Of a stretch of DNA of 64,000 bases, positions 10,595-48,200 are shown piece after piece. Origin of the DNA: Mytilus trossulus (lineage: Eukaryota); contig NW_026963294.1 of the NCBI RefSeq assembly GCF_036588685.1, positions 124,001 through 188,000 on the forward strand, in the 5' to 3' direction. Below the pieces are notes generated by a model. It saw only the letters and a list, made by a program, of their open reading frames with translations. It was not told the DNA's origin and ran no database searches. The first letter of the stretch is position 1, and each line of letters begins with the position of its first letter. A program made the translations under genes and the position numbers.

Positions 10595-11010
10595 TAAGAA
10601 TAAGAATGATGTGATGTGATGTGATTGCAAATGAGAGCTGACAAAGAAGACCAAATGACACAGACATATACAACTATAGGTCACAGTACGACCTTCAAAA
10701 CTGTGCAAATTACATACAAGAAACTCAGCTATAGAAGGCCCTAATAATGACAAAAGGAAAAGAAATCGCTATAATGAAAGATATACAAATGTATTACACA
10801 TCAACAAACGACAACCACTAAATTGCAGGCTCCTGACTTGGGACAGACACATACTTAATGTTGTCAGTTTTAACTCGTTTGAAGGCGACAGCCTCCCCCC
10901 CCCTTAACTTGGGGCAGTGCTGTAAAATAAGAACAAACTATTAAAATCAGTAGAAAAAAATATTAACTCATCAGATGGATACAAATAGATTTACAAAAAC
11001 AGAGTATACT
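10595..11010 (-). mobile_element. Degenerate copy of non-autonomous retroposon family 2
   Basis: Reverse complement is similar to 44835-45280, including ggctcctgacttgggacag. Confidence 0.7.
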
Positions 11011-14260: not shown

Positions 14261-14360
14261 AACTGTCATATTCCTGACTTGGTACAGGCATTTTCAAATG
14301 TAGAAAATGGTGGATTAAACCTGGTTCTATAGCGCTAACCCTCTCACTTTAATAACAGTC
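14261..14360 (-). ncRNA. Putative P5-type twister-like ribozyme in the PLE 3' end
   Basis: GACUGUUAU..GAGGGUU..UUUAAUCCAC-CAUUUUC/GAAAAUG-CCUGUACCAAGUCAGG..AUGACAGUU. Confidence 0.6.
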
Positions 14361-14459
14361 TCATCAAATTCCGCTACATTTACATGATGCGTTAAATAAA
14401 CAGTCACAATTAATAAAATAGTCAAAATATGGGTACATCAGTCATCATTGTATAACAAT

Positions 14460-15095
14460 TTTAAAAGGAACAATTTAACAGGACACAAAAACATCTACTA
14501 TCTACGAACACATGGATTGATTTGAGTGTCTGACGTCAGAAAAAATATATACGTCACATAAATTTGTTGTTCATTGTGCATACAATAGTTATCAAAAGTA
14601 CCAGGATTATAAACAATTTAAAATTTACATAGGCAATGAACGCATACAGGGTTAAATAATCATTTGTCGTTCAATGTGCATAACAAACAATTTTAAAATT
14701 TACAAAGGCAATGTACGCATACAGGGTTAAAAAATCAAAAGTATGTAAGAATTAATTACAGAAATAGACCGAGATTCAAACTAGTCCAAAAGTTATACAT
14801 ATAATTTATGAGAATACAAAACTTTTAAAAGGAACAATTTAACAAGACACAAAAACATCTACTATCTACATGTGATCTACGAACACATGGATTGATTTGA
14901 GTGTCTGACGTTAGAAAAATTATATACGTCACATAAATTTGTCGTTCAATGTGCATACAAACAATTTTAAAATTTTCATAGGCAATGTACGCATACAGGG
15001 TTAAAAAATCAAAAGTATGTAAGAATAAATTACAGAAATAGACCGAGATTCAAACTAGTCCAAAAGTTATACATAGAATTTATGAGAATCCAAAA
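14460..15095. repeat. ~365-bp tandem duplication in the PLE 3' UTR
   Basis: ttttaaaaggaacaatttaaca.gacacaaaaacatctac at about 14459 and 14823. The first copy carries a 26-nt retrozyme-end fragment (14586-14611). Confidence 0.85.
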
Positions 15096-15459
15096 ATTGT
15101 TAATTCCACTACGCCATTGATTAATTTTGACGTTTGTGGTTCAACGTATATAGTAATTCATAATAGAAATATATCATAATGACATATTTAGACAAATATC
15201 ATACTGACAGGATCTTTTAAAGTATAGAGTCACGTTATAAGCACAAAAGAAATATAAAGAGTCACATATACAAAACAAATCACCAAAAAATGAAAGCCAA
15301 TACAAACACATTGACGAGATGTATAAGTACCGAGCCACGTCAAACGGATATTACATAAAACCATTCAACAGTAAAAGTAATCTTAATAATAGAACAAAAA
15401 CAAATAAAAGAACAATAAAACATGTTGTTCAGATGATACACAACATCAGTACGCAGAAT

Positions 15460-17058
15460 CTATACATCAAGACCATCGTGTATTATTTGAGAAGTTGATA
15501 CGGAATATTTATCAACAAGGTCTTGGTACCTTCCGATGAACTTTTTTAGAAAAAGGACGAGACGTTCTTTGACATACCCCTGGTTCATCAACTTTCTACT
15601 CAGACACTGATGACGTTTTACAAAGTCTGAGTAGGAGCTGCAAGCTCTTGAATATCGAATAAGTTGGGAAATATATATCCCATATGCAGGTGAAGTTGGT
15701 ATATTGCTACTAAGGTGGGGGAAATTTATAATTTCGAAATTAAAATCGTCTCGTTTGTCATAGATTCTGGTACTGAGATGACTGTGTAAGTCAAATTCGA
15801 GATATAAGTCTAAAAATGAGGTGGAGGAAGCCGTGTCTGTTGTTTCTTTAATCTCGAGTTCTTGGGGATATATTAATGGAACCCAATCAGAAAAGTTCGG
15901 ATTGTTTAAGGAAAGAACATCATCAATATATCTGAAAGTGAAATTAAATAATCTGGCTTCTTTGATCCTCTTGTTTTTGACAAGTGTCTGGAGGAACTCC
16001 GTTTCATATGAAAATAAGAAAAGGTCGGCAAGAAGAGGCGCACAGTTTGTTCCCATAGGAATGCCAACAACTTGTTGGAAAAGTCTACCTCCAAACTCAA
16101 CAAATATGTTGTCGATAAGAAACTCCAGCATACTGACTACTTGTTCTTCTGTGTAGCATGATTTACCTTTTTGTTTGTCACTATTAACGAAATATGCTTT
16201 ATGAAATCCCAAAGTAATAAATTTATAGCGTATGCTACCATTTTCATGTTGAAAGGCATAATGGATTATTCCTTTTAGGCGATTTTTCAATTTTACATGG
16301 GGAATGGTGGTATACATGGTTGAAAAATCAAAAGTTTTGATGGAACTTATTTCAGAAAGAGACCGAGATTTGAAATTGTTTAGAAGTTCTTTAGAATTTT
16401 TAAGAATCCACATATGGTTAATACCACTACGCGAGTAAACAGTTTCACAGTATTTCTGAAGACCCTCTTTCACTGCGGACAGAATTTTAGTCAATCTTGT
16501 AGATAATTCTTTAGTGGAAACAGCAATATACCGTTGTTTGTACGGAATTTTATGAAACTTTGGTATCCAATACAAACAAGGTAAGTCCTCCGATTTGGTG
16601 TTCAATGTAATGTCTATTGAAGCCGTGAAGGACTTATGATTTGCTAAAATCTCATCCTTGTCAAATGATATGTCTTTGTATGTGGGATTACCTGAGTGCT
16701 CCGTTATACCCAATTCTTTTACAAGACATTCGTAGTAATACGATTTACATACAAAGACAATATTATTTGAAGCTTTGTCCGCAGGAACAACAACATACTT
16801 ATCATGAAGAGTTGATAGACATTTCATGACCTCTTTGTCTCTGAAAACGGACTTTGGTCGATCGTTCACACAGTTTTTCAACTTGTGAATGCGACGTTTT
16901 ATCAGAGACCTGATAGTTTTAACCCATTCTGACAAAGTGTCCAGTTCAACTTCTTCTCGCTTAGCCCATGCTCTGGCGTAGTCCTCAATAGAATCCATAA
17001 TTATTTTTGAAGTTATGGTTCCAATTGAAGTGTTGGGGTTCTCTAAACTAAGGACCAT
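15460..17058 (-). pseudogene. Penelope-like reverse transcriptase: a 532-codon open stretch of a disrupted ORF
   Basis: PADKASNN, YWIPKFHK, TFDFSTMYT, GIPMGTNCAP, FRYIDD, FLDL, IYDKRDDF; upstream nonsense codon and frameshift at about 17048. Confidence 0.92.
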
Positions 17059-18166
17059 GAGAAATCACCTTTCGGAGATTTTCATGTTGAATTATATTTA
17101 GATCCCCAGTTATAACATGACCAGAGGGGCTGTAATTATAAAGCGAGTGGGAACAGTCACATGTCTGAGAGTTTTTAAGGTATTGTTCTAAATCAAGGTC
17201 CTGCGATGCCTGTTTATAGTTAAATATTTTAGGTGCAATGGTTTTGGTGTAACTGTAGGATACAATAGGAACAGACTGATTTTGAAAATAAATAGGAATT
17301 TTAGATGTTTCCTCCTTGTGATGTAGAACGTTGCAGATATTGGTTGCATCGATTCCTCTATTGGCAAAATCAACAGGAAGGAATCTCCTATTTTCTTCAT
17401 GTAAAGGTTCAGATCTTACTGGTTTGAAAAGACGGAAAAGAGCTACATCACAAATAATACTGACTAGTCTGTATATTGCAGAAAATGTATATGTGCCTCC
17501 TTTGTCAAGTGCATAATCTCTCAAACGTTTAAGAAAATTAACTGGCAGTGAAAAGAGAATAGTTCTTATGTAATGTAACCCTAGTGGATGATGAAGATGT
17601 GAAAGAAGGTCATCAAAGCTCCCAGATGGTGATCTAGATTTGGAAGATTTTTTACATTAGGCCGATGGTAATGTGTTTGCCCATGACTACGTTGTTGTCG
17701 TAATGAAGTATTAAATAAACTCATTACATTAACATCACTGCAGGCAGGACTTGACAAATTTCCTACGCCTTTAATATCGTCATTGCAACCATATGGCATT
17801 GCAGTCCCTATAACTCCCTTATCCAAACATTTTCTCTATCTTTGCGGAAGGGAGTACTTAGTACAGGGCTATTTGTGTGGTGATAAATTTTCTCAATGAT
17901 GCGTACTTTCATAGATAAAGAAGGATCATGGTCCGGTTGATTAAAATGGTTATAAAGAACCCTATATTGAGGATCTTTATTATCAGACCGGTGTTGATTC
18001 ATTCTTTTACGCAAAGTTTGACGAGTTTCACCAACATAAAGAAGCCCACACAAAGTACATTCGATTCCGTACACGACATTGTCCGTGGAACAGTCCAGAG
18101 GCTCGAAAGATTTAGTATAATATGTTTTAGAGGTTAAATTACTAGTAAAATCAGGAGTCGTGATAA
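17048..18166 (-). pseudogene. PLE GIY-YIG endonuclease plus linker, frameshifted
   Basis: NVVYGIECTLCGLLYVGETRQTLRKRMNQHR...RENVWIREL/GTAMPYGCND; frameshifts at about 17808 and 17625. Confidence 0.9.
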
Positions 18167-19228
18167 ACATTTAAAGAGCAAAGGTCATTGTTTTGATTTT
18201 CTCAAAATAGGACACAGGACAGTTAACTATAAAATGCGTGCCACATGTCTTATTTGTACCAAAAGACATCCAACTTTACTTCACGACAAAGACAAAGTAC
18301 CAAGAGATGTTATACCAATGAAACAGGGTGAACGTTTGACAGAGGTGGAAAATAAGACTAGCAACATGCACAAGCTATTTATCAGATAATAACAGCAAAG
18401 TAGGGGCTGGAGATATGTCATATGCAATGGCTATAATACCAGTAAGGGTAAAACTGAAGAATAAAGCACCTTGTGTAGAGACATACGCCTTCTTTGATTC
18501 AGGAAGTAGCGTGTCATTCTGTACGGAAAATCTGTTGCATAAGCTAGGTGGAAATGGTAAAAGAATGCAAATTACACTGAATACCATGGGTGAACCGTAT
18601 AAGATGACAACTTATGCAGTTTCTGGATTACAAGTATTGGACCTAGAAATGAATGATGTTGTAGAACTCCCAAGAGACTATACAAAGGATGAGATACCAG
18701 TTTCAGTGGATCACATTCCGAAACAAGAAGAAATCTCGAAATGGAGTCACTTGTCTGGAATTAAATAGCATAACATTGATGCTAGTATTGGACTTATAAT
18801 AGGCAATGCTGTCCAAGATGCCTACACACCATTTGAGGTTGCAACAGGACCAAGTGGATCCCCACATGTCACACGCACTAGATTACGATGGATTATATGG
18901 AATATGATACGAAAATGTACAGAAACTAATAAAGTCGTTAATCGAATAGAGATGTCTGCGATTCATGAAGAAGAGCATTCAAGGATTAACGAGTTAGTTG
19001 TAAAATCTATGAACTTTGATTTTCCTGAACGCATTATAGATGACAAGAGAGAAAACTCAGTAGACAACAATTCTTTCTTAGATTATGTGAATAAGAATAT
19101 TTGTTTTGAGAAGGGACAGTACTACATTCCGCTACCCTTCCGTGACAGCAATGTGAAACTGCCGAATAATGCTTCCCAGGGGCAAAAACGCTTGAAAAGT
19201 CTTAAAACAAGTTTATTAAGAATCCTTA
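18167..19228 (+). pseudogene. BEL gag Zn knuckles and aspartic protease
   Basis: GHCF..LKIGH...TCLICTKRHPTLLH; YAFFDSGS; GQYYIPLPF. Confidence 0.88.
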
Positions 19229-24975: not shown

Positions 24976-25669
24976 GATGGGCGTTAATATTGATTTACTT
25001 ATAGGGTCTTTGCATCGGAACTAAACACATTTATAAAAAAACAGTTGTTGGCATGACACAGGTTATGTTCTTCTCATATATGTTATGATGGTATGATACT
25101 AAACCCCTAACGGGAAAGAGTGTGCCTGATGTACATATGATGAAATCATAATCTTTCATTCAGTTTAATTGAAGTCTGGAGCTGGCATGTCAGTTAATTT
25201 CTAGTAGTCTGTTGTTATTTATGTATTATTGTCATTTTGTTTATTTTCTTTGGTTACATCTTCTGACATCAGACTCGGACTTCTCTTGAACTGAATTTTA
25301 TTGTATGTATTGTTATTCGTTTACTTTTCTACATTGGCTAGAGGTATAGGGGGAGGGTTGAGATCTCACAAACATGTTTAACCCCGCCGCATTTTTGCGC
25401 CTGTCCCAAGTCAGGAGCCTCTGTCCTTTGTTAGTATTGTATTATTCTAATTTTAGTTTCTTGTGTACAATTTGGAAATTAGTTTGGCGTTCATTATCAC
25501 TGAACTAGTAAATATTTGTTCAGGGGCCAGATGAAGGACGCCTCTGGGTGCGGGAATTTCTCGCTACATTGAAGACCTGTTGGTGACCTTCTGCTGTTGT
25601 TTTTTTACTATGGTCGGGTTGTTGTCTCTTTGAGACATTCCCCATTTCCATTCTCAACATTTCCATTTT
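24976..25669 (+). mobile_element. Non-autonomous retroposon family 1, 694 bp
   Basis: Interrupts integrase KWAF|NPP and is flanked by ATTC. Its 3' end ...acattccccatttccattctcaa recurs at 27784-27836, 43416-43600 and 60848-60928. Confidence 0.85.
25336..25426 (+). ncRNA. Putative P5-type twister-like ribozyme
   Basis: GGCUAGAGGU-AUA-GGGG-GA-GGG...UAA-CCCC-GC-CGCA/UGCG-CCUG-UCCCAAGU-CAGG-A-GCCUCUGUCC. Confidence 0.7.
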
Positions 25670-39023: not shown

Positions 39024-41009
39024 AACCGGTCTTTTCGGAGCCAAATATACTACCCCTTACGAAAGTCATTGTCCTTGATTGACGATTTTGTCCATTTTCT
39101 TGGAAATTTATCTTTAAACTATAATATATAGAAAGAAGCTCTACGGAGCAAAAACGATCAACCCAATAAGATCTACAAACAAGTCAGCACAGACGACTCT
39201 TGGAAGGAGTGGTTGCCCTTAAATGATGATAAATTTGAGATTAACGGAAACTTTACAAAATAGATAGAAAAAAAAGAGACAATGATTAGCAAATAAGACA
39301 TGATCAACAAATTAGCAAATAAGAAAGAAAAAAGAGGACCAATGGTTGATGGACTTCTTATAGCGTTAAATGATTGTTTTTTACAAATTTTGACTGTTTT
39401 TACCTTAAATCTTAAACTATTATACTAGATAGAGGGAAACTTTGAACAACGCAAAATTTCGATCTATTTATAATAGTTTTAAGACTTTCACCTTAAATCT
39501 TGAAACTATTATAGATAGATCGAAACTTTGAATAACAAAAACGATCATCAACGCAATGTTTGAAATTGTTGCTTACTATCATGAAAACACTAAACAATAG
39601 ATATAAACTCAGTCTAGAAAAAAAATGATCAGCAAGATCGGTTTTTAGCCCACAGATATTCTTTTTATCATGAATATGCTTATTGTAATGTATCTATTTC
39701 ATGCAATAATACCAAGCGAACAATACAAAAAACAGCCTCTAGTTTCAATATTGTCTGCATCGGCTTGTTAACTTGAAAAAAAAGTCATTAAAGAACCATA
39801 TAACGATATAGGTTTATTATGACCTTTTTTAAGTTAACACCGAAGAGTTGTGAAAAAGGTGACAAAGTAATGTGCTAGACCTACGTGTATTCAGCAAATA
39901 ACAATAAATAACAAGCTCTTGGCTTGGGACAGGAATATAAATAATTTGGTGAGGTTGTACATGTTAACAAGCGTCCAACCATCACCGAGTCCGGGAGCTG
40001 TAACAGCATAACTTACGTTACAGAAATGAGACTTGTTTGAACATAACAATATCAATCAGATAAAGCATTATGCTGATTAAAAAAGATACAAATAAGGAGA
40101 TTTTTCTTATGTCGTAATTATAGTTCGGCAAAGTCGATACCAAATGGTAATATAGATAATAATTGTCTTACATATACAACAATTCTAATACAATTTATAA
40201 TTCTAAATATTTATCATTACGATAAATTCTAAACTTCTATGTATCTCTGACATATTGATTACCTATCACGATAAATTTGCGCATCTTTTCTTTCTTAATT
40301 ATTGCCATAGATCGTCAACATTCCTTCATTTTTAGAACACGGATTAGGAATTTGTAATTGAAACGTATGACACAAAATTCTATGCTAATAACACGTCATC
40401 AGTTTTTTTAGCTTGCTATTTATTAATTAATGAATTTAAACAATGCCAACTATTTCGACTGACGATATTCATAAATATGTTAACATTGTGTCTTACAAAT
40501 ATTACTTCCAAAAATAATGCTCAATCTATTTCTCATCGGGGATTGCTATAACAATTTAAATAAGTTAAAGTGAAGTGAAAACCATCCTGTTAAAAAGAAG
40601 TTTGAACTTTCGTACAAATAAAATCTCTGTTAGGTTGTTCATATCCCAAAAAAAAGATGAGAAATTACTTATAAACAAAGGGCTAAACTCTCATTATATT
40701 AAATACGGCACTACACGAAAAGGCAGATTTGCAACAATTTGGACAGTCATGTAAATCTTTGACAAATGTAACTACTTTTCTGCAAGATATCTTTGCGGAC
40801 CTGCTAATGTATATGTAAATGTATTATTCCTTTGACATTATTTAGGAGGTAGTCAAAGATATGCTAAAGATAATTATTTTATTTCCATAGCTTTAGTCAT
40901 TCTCCAAAGATATGTAAAGATAGGCCATAGATTTACATGCACTTTCCAAGATAGGAGATATATGCAAAGTTTAAAATTTGCATAACTGATTTACAGTGGT
41001 GTGGGCAGT

Positions 41010-44834: not shown

Positions 44835-45282
44835 CCTACCCGGCCACGTCCACTTGTATTTTTTCTATCTGATGAGTTAGGCCTTTTTCAACTGATTTTT
44901 TTAGATTGTTCTTATGTTATACTGTTATACCACTGTCCCAGGTTAGGGGAGGGTTGGGATCTCGCTAACATGTTTAACCGCGCCACATTATGTATGTATG
45001 TGCCTGTCCCAAGTCAGGAGCCTGTAACTCAGTGATGGTCGTTTTCTTATGTGTTACATATTTGCTTTTCGTTCATTTTTTTACATAAATAAGGCCGTTA
45101 GTTTTCTCTTTTGAATTGTTTTACATTGTCTTATCGGGGCTTTTATAGCTGACTATGCGGTATGGGCTTTGCTCATTGTTGAAGGTCGTACGGTGACCTA
45201 TAGTTGTTAGTGTTTGTGTCATTTCGGTCTTTTGTGGATAATTGTCTCATTGGCAATCATACCACATTTTCTTTTTTATATT
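44835..45282 (+). mobile_element. Retroposon family 2 with a twister-like module at 44930-45035
   Basis: gggagggttgggatc...tttaaccgcgcc...gcctgtcccaagtcaggagcctg; 3' end ttgtctcattggcaatcataccacat. Related fragments at 19790-19860, 46895-47195 and 47700-47892. Confidence 0.8.
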
Positions 45283-48200
45283 TAAATTGAAGTTCAACCT
45301 GAATAGGTATTACAACATCGTTAACGGAGAAGTTGTATGTAAAAAAGATGTTGTATGATAGCCAATGGGACGAATAGGTACCAAAGCATGATGCGAGTTA
45401 AAGATTGAAAAATCAGAAATGTGCTGTTGAAGGCCGTACTTTAACCTATAATGGTTTAATTTTTGAATTGTTGTTTGGATGGAGAGTTGTCTCATTGGCA
45501 CTCACACCACATCTTCCTATATCTACCTGATATATTCATAGACACAGAGGCTTGTCACTTTTTTGTTTATCTTTTTATTGGAAAATATTCTTTAATATTT
45601 CAACTTATTTAGAGTTTTAAACGTTTATCAATGCGATTTGAATATAACGATAGTTCATGTATTTTGCCCCTCTTTCCTTTTCCCCGCCTGTATGAAAAGC
45701 AAGTACAATGATACATGTTTCCGACTCCACTGTTAAAGTACAAATGATACATGTAGTTATTTTTCGACTTTGCGTAAAATATTTTGAAGAAAGAAGTGCA
45801 AGATATTCCATTGTTCAAACACGAATCATATAACTGTCATTTCCGCTAAAACTATAAGTCTAGACTTCGTCATGTTGTACAGGGTACAATTGCCTTTTAT
45901 CTTTTAAAGATATGTTTCCATGGTTTTTTTTTATCTTGTATTGTGACTGTCATTTGTTTTTTGTGTTGTGTGTATAGTATATGTTGTGTAGACCCGTAAG
46001 TTTTTGAGATGCTGATCCAAGCCTAAAAAATGTCTTCTTGAATAATGTTAAAACAAAATGAATTTGTCACATCAATTCTTGTTATTTCAATTAAAAAAGT
46101 GTACAAAGTATATTATTATGTTAAATGTAATTATTGCCAAAAAAATAAAAAAAAATAAAAACTAAAACTTATTTGATCATGACAGACAAAATACGATTCC
46201 TGTCAAAGTACATATGAAAGCTCTAAAATTTTAGGATAGAATAGGCGATAAATGAGATATCGAATGACTAACAGTTCGACAAGTTGCTTGCTTTAAAAAA
46301 AGAAATGCAATCGTAAACCCAAATGCTTGTTTGGCATTATATATATATTAGATAATTGTTTAATAAAGATGTATTGTTTTATATTACTTTTGTTGTGCAT
46401 AAGAATTAGAAACTGACATTGCCTGTTTACTTCATGTAATACCGGCGTCACACATCAACGTATAGATCCGACGTACGTCGACCGTGGTAAAAAAATTCAT
46501 GCACGCTACCAATACGCTAGTAATTTTGATGCATTCAACCTGTCAATTATATCTGTATCGTGTGCACAACCAGCTTAAAGCGTGTATTGGGTGTGCGTAA
46601 AGCGTACCTAAGCGTTTCTCCTAGTCTTTCTACATTCCCAACTGCAGATCTGGGCCGGCTATATGTAAATGTTTGTCAATAAGTCTGTCACATTCGCCCG
46701 TCTCTTTACATGTTTACCAGTCCGTCTATGTTCACTAGCTTTGAAATAGCTTTCGGTAAGTGCGATTATTTTAGTGATTTGTGTCTATTGTTTTTATGTA
46801 AGTGATTATTGTGCACCGTAGCCATATTTTTAGGGACGCGAATTACAACTGATAGTTTACAGTTTTTTCTTGCGATGTGTTGTCTTTAAGGTTTGGTCCA
46901 TTTGGGAGGGTTGGGTTTATGGCCACCACATTGTTTATGTACCAATGTCCATTCTAAAGCCAGAAACATGTAGTACAGTGGTTGTTGTTCATAATTCATG
47001 TCGGTCAACTTTTTTTTCGTAAATTATTTTGTTATTAATAATTAAATGCTGTTTAGTTTTGTTTGATTTTTGTTTTTAAATCTTAATGGTCGGGGCATTT
47101 AATAGCCGACTAAATAGTTTTTTTTTCATTTTTGGAGGCCTTTAAAGACTTACTACCACGTCATTGTAACTCTGGTTTGTACTTGTATCATTAGTGCTGG
47201 ACCATGGTCGTTCCTATGTACCTTTGAGGCAGGCGGGATATTTTTGTAGATCTTGTACAGCTCAAACTAATGGGATTAGTTCCTGTACTTCTATGTCTAG
47301 TCCCATGTTGCATGCCAGTGGTTGGAGAGGGTGTAATATCTTCTGTAGGTTTGATGAAGTTTCAACCGTATCGGATTTCTTCTCCTGAATGAAAGCTTTA
47401 AGGCGACGAGTATCAGTTGTGTATGGAATGTGCCCTTAACGTGTCTCAAACGAATCTGTAGCGTTTTCAACGCTCGTGTAGCGTGAATATATGTGCGTGT
47501 AGTTTACAGGTATACGCTTGACAACCGCTTGAGCTGAATGAATTATTTTATGTTCCATTAAAATTTTCCTGAAATAAAAGCGTTCACCAAGCCTATACCT
47601 TTGCATTTCGACGTACTTCAAACTTATGGAACGCGGGTTTAAACGCTTGCGTAGCGTTCCTCTGGTGATCAACTAATTTACGCATACGATGATACGAACT
47701 TTGTTAATTTTCTTTTTTGACTGATTGTTTTTTACATTATCATTTCGGACCCTTTTATAGCCGACTATGCAGTACGTGCTTTGCCTGTTGTTGAAGGCCG
47801 TACGGTGACCAATAGTTTGTATTTCTGTGTTATTTTGGTTTCTTGTAGATAGTTGACTTATTGACACCAAACCATATCTTCTTTTTTATATTCGATATCT
47901 TATCGCCGACCTGGTTAGGTCTGCTAAAAATGCATTCATGATTTATTTTTAGGTTATCAGTCGTAATTAAATTGGCACATTTAATTGGTTGTTTCATTGC
48001 TTGAAGTATCATTTCTTACATCTGCATGGTCAAATGTGTATTTTTTTTAAATAAATTTTAGATTTAGATTTCAGTCACGGTAATTTTCCCCCCTTCATAT
48101 TGAATATCTATACTTATCAGTCGCATTTTAATGACGAAAAGGATTCAGAGGTTATTATGTGACCTCCTTGTTTTTCAAAAAAGTAAATAATGTTGCAATA

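Follow-up and report, generated by a model that had tools for sequence, protein, structure and literature searches.

We propose that the stretch at 25336-25426 (plus strand) of the window, the whole analysed sequence of 64,000 nucleotides, is a twister-class self-cleaving ribozyme motif of type P5, which lies on the sense strand in the 3' UTR of Naiad-type Penelope-like elements (PLEs) and is predicted to cut at a U^A step. Judging from the sequence evidence set out below, we give this reading a probability of roughly 60%. As read from the sequence, the 91 bases contain every core part of a twister, in the type-P5 order and at fixed spacing. On the plus strand, the 5' strand of P5, GGCUAGAGGU (25336-25345), has its partner GCCUCUGUCC at 25417-25426 and is separated by AUA (25346-25348) from the 5'-located strand of P2, GGGG (25349-25352), which pairs with CCCC at 25382-25385. 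Then come G25353, at the position of the twister general base, and A25354, the T1 partner of a loop A (roles assigned after McKinley 2024, PMC11662667), and the GGG strand of pseudoknot T1 (PK2; 25355-25357), complementary to CCC at 25405-25407. A linker of 21 nt (25358-25378), holding the palindromes UGAGAUCUCA (25359-25368) and AACAUGUU (25371-25378), stands at the place of the P1 hairpin and leads to the predicted scissile site, U25379^A25380, with A25381 beside it, as expected from the twister rule N^AA-P2. The 3'-located P2 strand continues directly into the T2 (PK1) strand, so that CCCC and GC together occupy 25382-25387, and the GC (25386-25387) pairs with GU at 25410-25411 by one G.U and one C-G pair. 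The P3 hairpin CGCA-UUUU-UGCG (25388-25399) is recovered by MFE folding, and is followed at 25400-25416 by P4 (CCUG at 25400-25403 with CAGG at 25412-25415), its loop L4 (UCCCAAGU, 25404-25411) and the conserved A25416. MFE folds also recover P5, which has 7+2 bp in this copy since T25423 gives a C.U mismatch; other copies of the same family have a G at this position and a helix of 10 bp. Save for that mismatch, the part-by-part description in an earlier sequence-only reading fits the DNA, its type-P5 architecture is borne out by the core parts, their order and their spacing, and the cuts that it predicted (25379|25380 here and 44975|44976 in a second copy) are consistent with the N^AA rule.

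Features of the twister class were analyzed as summarised in McKinley 2024 (PMC11662667). The scissile N^A step, with one more A between it and P2, is kept in copies of the families F1 (to which the copy at 25336-25426 belongs), F2 and F3 and at the metagenome loci L111 and L136. The P4 hairpin carries the expected loop U-CCC-A-A-G-Y in the form CCUG-UCCCAAGU-CAGG. For T1, the loop CCC(A) is matched by (A)GGG 3' of the general-base G and 88.7% of cells pair; for T2, in which the dinucleotide following P2 pairs with the final two bases of the loop, the figure is 91.4%. T2 is GC with GU in the copy at 25336-25426 and AC with GU in L111, L136 and F3, and wobbles in PK1 are reported to be tolerated (McKinley 2024, PMC11662667). 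P2 is GGGG/CCCC with the conserved G25353 in F1 and is paired in 73% of cells overall, being weaker (2-3 pairs) in F3, a family with an ACC loop that includes the third copy of the window. The intact families retain every catalytic or near-catalytic position, namely A1, A2, the general-base G and the As of the loop. The one structural feature that we did not find is the P1 helix, as the linker at 25358-25378 has no stable intramolecular fold.

The motif is present several times in the window. Two further copies had been named before, and both exist with the stem sequences then given. The second (F2; 44939-45024, plus strand, 73.2 bits with our covariance model) has P5 CAGGU/GCCUG, P3 CACAU/AUGUG, a mutated P2 (CCGC) and a predicted cut at 44975|44976, and the third (F3, loop UACCAAGU; 14262-14359, minus strand, 86.9 bits) is predicted to be cut between 14317 and 14316. 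A fourth, decayed F2-like copy lies at 10826-10911 (minus strand, 63.1 bits) and a fifth, strongly decayed one at 39909-39997 (minus strand, 33.8 bits). Altogether the model matched the window eight times, with E <= 1e-5 in five cases, and the 16-mer of P4/L4, CCTGTCCCAAGTCAGG, occurred six times with at most two mismatches, as compared to none in 100 shuffles.

The earlier reading had pointed to the Rfam twister-P5, -P1 and -P3 models as a check, and here the outcome was negative: the mollusc copies were not significantly matched, though positive controls scored. In the window the twister models gave no match at the gathering threshold, and at E <= 10 just 13.3 and 16.1 bits over P3-P4; six metagenome copies of the mollusc form likewise gave no significant match to the P1, P3 or P5 model. 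With the controls scoring well, we attribute this failure to the missing P1 hairpin, the long linker and the extra P3 of the mollusc form. When metagenome contigs were searched for the P4/L4 17-mer, 120 loci were retrieved. Many of them are canonical P1-type twisters on contigs that are either host-associated or of bacterial or phage origin, and these twisters reach 43-52 bits (E <= 1e-6) with Rfam twister-P1. The 17-mer of the copy at 25336-25426 is identical to that in the Rfam-scored twisters of metagenome and viral contigs. Bacterial type-P5 twisters (L144), with the same order of parts and the same loop as the mollusc motif, reach 43-48 bits with Rfam Twister-P5, above threshold. Among the loci L065-L184 (Ga0056108, Ga0056133, Ga0056135, Ga0126325 and others) there is a large canonical P1-type twister family with the same P4/L4 17-mer; it is carried by dispersed repeats in host-associated metagenomes, probably of an invertebrate host, and its member L074 scores 46 bits with twister-P1.

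Selection on the RNA fold was analyzed by covariation among lineages sampled in the window, in further genomic loci and in metagenome contigs. In an alignment of 12 sequences (MAFFT, alignment A3; P2, P3, P4, T1 and T2) 84.2% of cells were paired, as compared to 30-44% in slid controls, with a covariation score of 0.25 against at most 0.09; the observed value was reached by none of 500 shuffles, a control that overstates significance for related sequences such as those aligned here. A covariance model without pseudoknots then gave 67 matches in 290 kb of loci, or 58 distinct rows, where 85.6% of helix and pseudoknot cells were paired (35-45% in the slid controls), the score was 0.256 (at most 0.078) and 11 pairs had changed on both sides. 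These figures bear out the covariation of stems and pseudoknots between families. T1 and T2 were absent from the alignment model, and therefore their support was not fitted. In the 58 rows the third pair of T1 is G-C in 33, U-A in 7 and U.G in 2, the change of the loop from CCC to ACC in the ACC-loop family being matched by a change from GGG to GGU, and T2 has as its first pair G.U (40 rows) or A-U (16 rows). Compensatory changes were seen in P2, P3, P5 and T1. P3 differs by family (CGCA/UGCG, CACAU/AUGUG, CAUUUUC/GAAAAUG), with compensatory changes in three of its four pairs; P4 is invariant and therefore gives no evidence from covariation. At least seven unrelated sequence versions of P5 were found, among them GGCUAGAGGU/GCCUCUGGCC, UUGGCCAAU/AUUGGCCAA, CUACGA/UCGUGG, ACUGUCAU/AUGACAGU and UUGCCAUAU/AUGUGGCAG. 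When the helix was anchored at the junction, at least 6 bp of P5 could be formed by 40% of the flank pairs from one and the same copy, as compared to 4% of cross-lineage pairs; an unconstrained search for the best helix within 20 nt of flank failed to separate own from cross pairs (mean 6.9 vs. 5.7 bp).

These data also bear on whether the motif is under selection at all. Copies of a repeat resemble each other by recent common descent, and a motif can be carried along as a neutral passenger. Such an explanation fits the 93-100% identity among copies of one family, as well as the conservation profile of two close lineages, L111 and L083, in which the motif is not clearly better kept than its flanks. 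Against this, the motif is common to families with just 41% identity between their reverse transcriptases (RTs) and with UTR flanks that have diverged beyond alignment, and the stems change in sequence yet keep their pairing, which makes neutral descent a very improbable account.

MFE folding of the motif recovers P5, P3 and P4 but pairs GGGUUG (25355-25360) with YAACCC (25379-25384). This competing helix joins the T1 strand and two Us to the scissile site and P2, and according to the MFE fold it would mask the predicted active site. It is kept as well as the twister pairs (85.4% paired, score 0.20 vs. at most 0.108) and one of its pairs has changed on both sides in 10 sequences. The functional unit might instead be a simple hairpin, GGGUUG...YAACCC with a palindromic loop, flanked by neighbouring hairpins, and the likeness to twister a coincidence. 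The MFE choice and the two-sided changes would be accounted for in this way. A hairpin of this kind leaves unexplained the near-invariant 8-base loop UNCCAAGU and the 17-base identity with twisters that Rfam recognises, as well as the match of the loop C-to-A change by a G-to-U change in T1 and the conserved G-A and AA positions. Moreover, a rough estimate from the descriptor gives about 0.1 chance matches for a genome of 1.3 Gb like this one, yet the motif occurs in several families with different stems. We therefore regard a coincidental likeness as improbable; under the twister reading, the GGGUUG/YAACCC helix may be an off-state of the fold.

The motif at 25336-25426 had been placed in a non-autonomous repeat, and this part of the earlier reading did not hold: the motif lies instead in the 3' UTR of an autonomous Naiad-type element that encodes an RT, in copies truncated at the 5' end. 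Comparison of the window by BLAST with 30 copies from the genome delimits the host at 24980-25657 (plus strand) as the dead tail, consisting of the last codons and the 3' UTR, of a 5'-truncated F1 element. The 30 copies are 95-100% identical over the motif and have a common sharp 3' end, corresponding to 25657 of the window, while their 5' ends vary. Longer F1 copies, followed upstream, lead into an ORF with reverse-transcriptase motifs, and one of them (L056) shows a C-N-C motif in addition to the RT motifs. A SINE or MITE was rejected as host because these longer copies extend into the RT ORF. Pfam found no significant family in the F1 RT ORFs, which we call RT because of their motifs, their homologues and their 41% identity to the RT of a second element within the window.

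This second element lies upstream of the third motif copy, on the same strand. Its Naiad-type ORFs at 15460-18170 (minus strand) comprise a GIY-YIG domain (17808-18170; Pfam 32.2 bits, above cut-off), a CxC linker (17048-17524) that contains a C-D-C motif, and an RT (15460-17058; RVT_1 weak). The ORFs are split into pieces, and they have 1847 homologues, some annotated as reverse transcriptase in pearl oyster. Pearl oyster is the source of those protein relatives that bear a species name, which points to a bivalve, probably a mussel, as the origin of the DNA. The motif follows about 1.1 kb past the RT stop of this near-complete element. Naiad-type PLEs are described as having an N-terminal GIY-YIG, a CxC linker and a C-terminal RT (Craig 2021, PMC8557442), and the minus-strand element has this order in one reading direction, so that its assignment is one from domain layout. 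Other Naiad traits are also visible: 5'-truncated insertions, partial tandems, and no canonical hammerhead in the window by Rfam. Naiads are reported to dominate bivalve genomes and to be without canonical hammerheads (Craig 2021, PMC8557442). The metagenome loci L083, L111 and L169 repeat the layout of the window element and F1, with an RT followed by the motif.

Among the copies examined for their host, only the family of the copy at 44939-45024 seems to form a short unit of some 445 bp (approximately 44837-45281), with no RT found adjoining. A hammerhead near this copy, suggested by the upstream string CUGAUGAG, was ruled out as Rfam gave no match. An AT-rich long hairpin at 45233-45386 adjoins the same copy and has weak matches to several models of plant microRNA precursors; most probably it represents the inverted-repeat end of a transposon and not a microRNA. 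The long 3' UTR of the window Naiad has internal direct repeats between the RT stop and the motif (14450-15100, minus strand), with 147-nt copies 274 nt apart and 86-nt copies 375 nt apart that are 93-95% identical.

The host Naiad family also looks selenoprotein-coding. In L056 (357-2783) a frame of 809 codons is open save for one in-frame TGA, and a SECIS-like element precedes the motif in the same 3' UTR at 25075-25139 (plus strand; Rfam SECIS_1 22.6 bits, E 0.09, below gathering). The homologous UTRs of L083 and L111 match SECIS_1 at 30.9 and 28 bits, also below the Rfam threshold. The TGA and these weak matches fit the selenoprotein-coding Naiads described by Craig 2021 (PMC8557442).

High copy number had been claimed from the sequence, and it was confirmed in the genome. 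Each family gave 1600-2000 or more first-look candidates at 93-100% identity, and in a model search all of 150 scored candidates, drawn from roughly 8 x 10^5 candidates at first look, reached at least 93 bits. On two contigs of genome G000 the model matches are spaced by 4273-4280 bp (C7:21535518/21539797/21544077, C7:1128964/1133238 and C6:67979124/67983397), and this spacing indicates full-length units arranged head to tail. Such tandems are what a ribozyme that processes transcripts to unit length would act on.

The linker in place of P1 has a pattern of its own. A pair of palindromes is present at the position of 25358-25378 in all families, and the symmetry is kept across at least eight sequence versions. 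The first palindrome occurs as UGAGAUCUCA, UGGGAUCCCA, AGCUAGCU, UAGCGCUA, UGGCUAGCCA, UGGCAUGCCA and UGGUACCA, the second as AACAUGUU, AACUAGUU, AACC-A-GGUU, AACA-A-UGUU and AACU-A-AGUU. A first palindrome of at least 8 nt was found in 49% of distinct linkers, as compared to 7% of shuffles. The predicted energy of the palindromes as monomers is -1.5 kcal/mol or weaker, and as homodimers -13 to -20 kcal/mol (-15.4 kcal/mol for the copy at 25336-25426).

Structures recognised by the RT sit in the 3' UTR of many retroelements. The fold might derive from a twister that has lost cutting and be kept as a structural RNA signal, either for recognition by the RT in target-primed reverse transcription or for palindrome-based dimerisation or packaging. 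The location of the motif in a 3' UTR, the missing P1, the failure of the Rfam models and the conservation of a helix that masks the cut site would all agree with such a signal, as would the strong predicted homodimers and the evidence that the palindromes are under selection of their own. For the ribozyme reading, it is not obvious what use a cut about 280 nt before the 3' end of the element would be to a single, non-tandem copy. On the other hand, the intact families keep the catalytic and near-catalytic positions, of which a mere structure has no need, and the complementarity of T1 and T2 is maintained through two-sided or wobble changes. The absence of P1 likewise loses weight, as this helix is reported to be dispensable for twister activity (McKinley 2024, PMC11662667, and earlier work). 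We consider a non-cutting signal unlikely, and prefer a type-P5 twister.

Since the P1 hairpin has given way to a linker that carries two palindromes, this twister may need a second, paired copy in order to cut, as do the dimeric hammerheads of PLEs. According to the 2017 work as cited in PMC7761336, small PLE hammerheads cut as dimers and have a weak terminal helix with a palindrome. Possibly, the P1-less Naiad twister is active only when two copies, in tandem units or on two RNAs, are paired by their palindromes, which would open the GGGUUG/YAACCC helix and couple dimerisation, self-cleavage and perhaps circularisation; we put this forward tentatively, as a rather doubtful extension. By analogy with these hammerheads, the pairing of two copies may either supply the missing helix or open the masking one, and we offer this as a hypothesis only.

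A possible course of events is modelled on the proposals made for PLE hammerheads and retrozymes. Transcripts through tandem or read-through units of active master copies, often arranged head to tail, would fold into P5-P2-P3-P4 with T1 and T2, and the twister fold would sever the U^A bond, which is 25379|25380 in the copy studied here. This would yield unit-length RNAs with 5'-OH and cyclic-phosphate ends, which a host ligase might circularise and the RT of the element might copy. The copy at 25336-25426, being a dead 5'-truncated tail, would cut only if transcribed by read-through.

Twisters and their P5 permutation are already known, as are hammerheads in PLEs, twisters that lie at the 5' end of LINEs and the prediction of twisters in bivalves. 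Type-P5 twisters, reportedly described by Roth et al. 2014, form Rfam family RF02684. They have the same arrangement as the mollusc motif: an open P5, a P2 strand, G-A-GGG, the P1 region, N^AA, P2, the PK1 dinucleotide, an optional P3, P4 with a UCCCAAGY loop, A and P5. The mollusc form differs by lacking the P1 hairpin, by its linker of 21-23 nt with two palindromes and by carrying P3, and it is eukaryotic, borne by a repeat and undetected by the Rfam model. P1-type eukaryotic twisters (RF03160) obey identical rules for P4/L4, PK1 and PK2 but have their termini in P1, whereas those of the mollusc motif are in P5. P1-type twisters, many of them repeat-borne, have been predicted in bivalves and gastropods (McKinley 2024, PMC11662667), and our comparison with these bivalve candidates is by description only.

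In Schistosoma mansoni, twister T-variants at the 5' end of Perere-3, an RTE-type non-LTR element, are of P1 type and cut in vitro and in reporter cells (Liu 2021, PMC8501958). They share with the mollusc motif the twister class within a retrotransposon, an unusual or imperfect P1 and a very high copy number, and the role proposed for both is the processing of element transcripts. Unlike them, the mollusc motif is a predicted ribozyme, is permuted and belongs to the 3' UTR of a Penelope-like element. Like the PLE hammerheads outlined in PMC7761336, it is a small motif, in this case putatively self-cleaving, close to the 3' end or pLTR of PLEs with tandem copies; the ribozyme class is a different one. 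Among the papers that we searched, none links Naiads with twister.

The report that Naiads are without hammerheads has cast doubt on whether a ribozyme matters to PLEs. If our reading is true, the Naiad clade swapped its ribozyme class instead of going without, which would strengthen the case for self-cleavage as part of the PLE life cycle. With their very high copy number, the mollusc copies would add possibly the first type-P5 twisters from a eukaryote, and for mechanistic work they would offer a natural twister that lacks P1 and is possibly both dimer-dependent and switchable. Should the dimer model also be true, Naiads would have in this motif a twister equivalent of the dimeric hammerheads that other Penelope-like elements carry.
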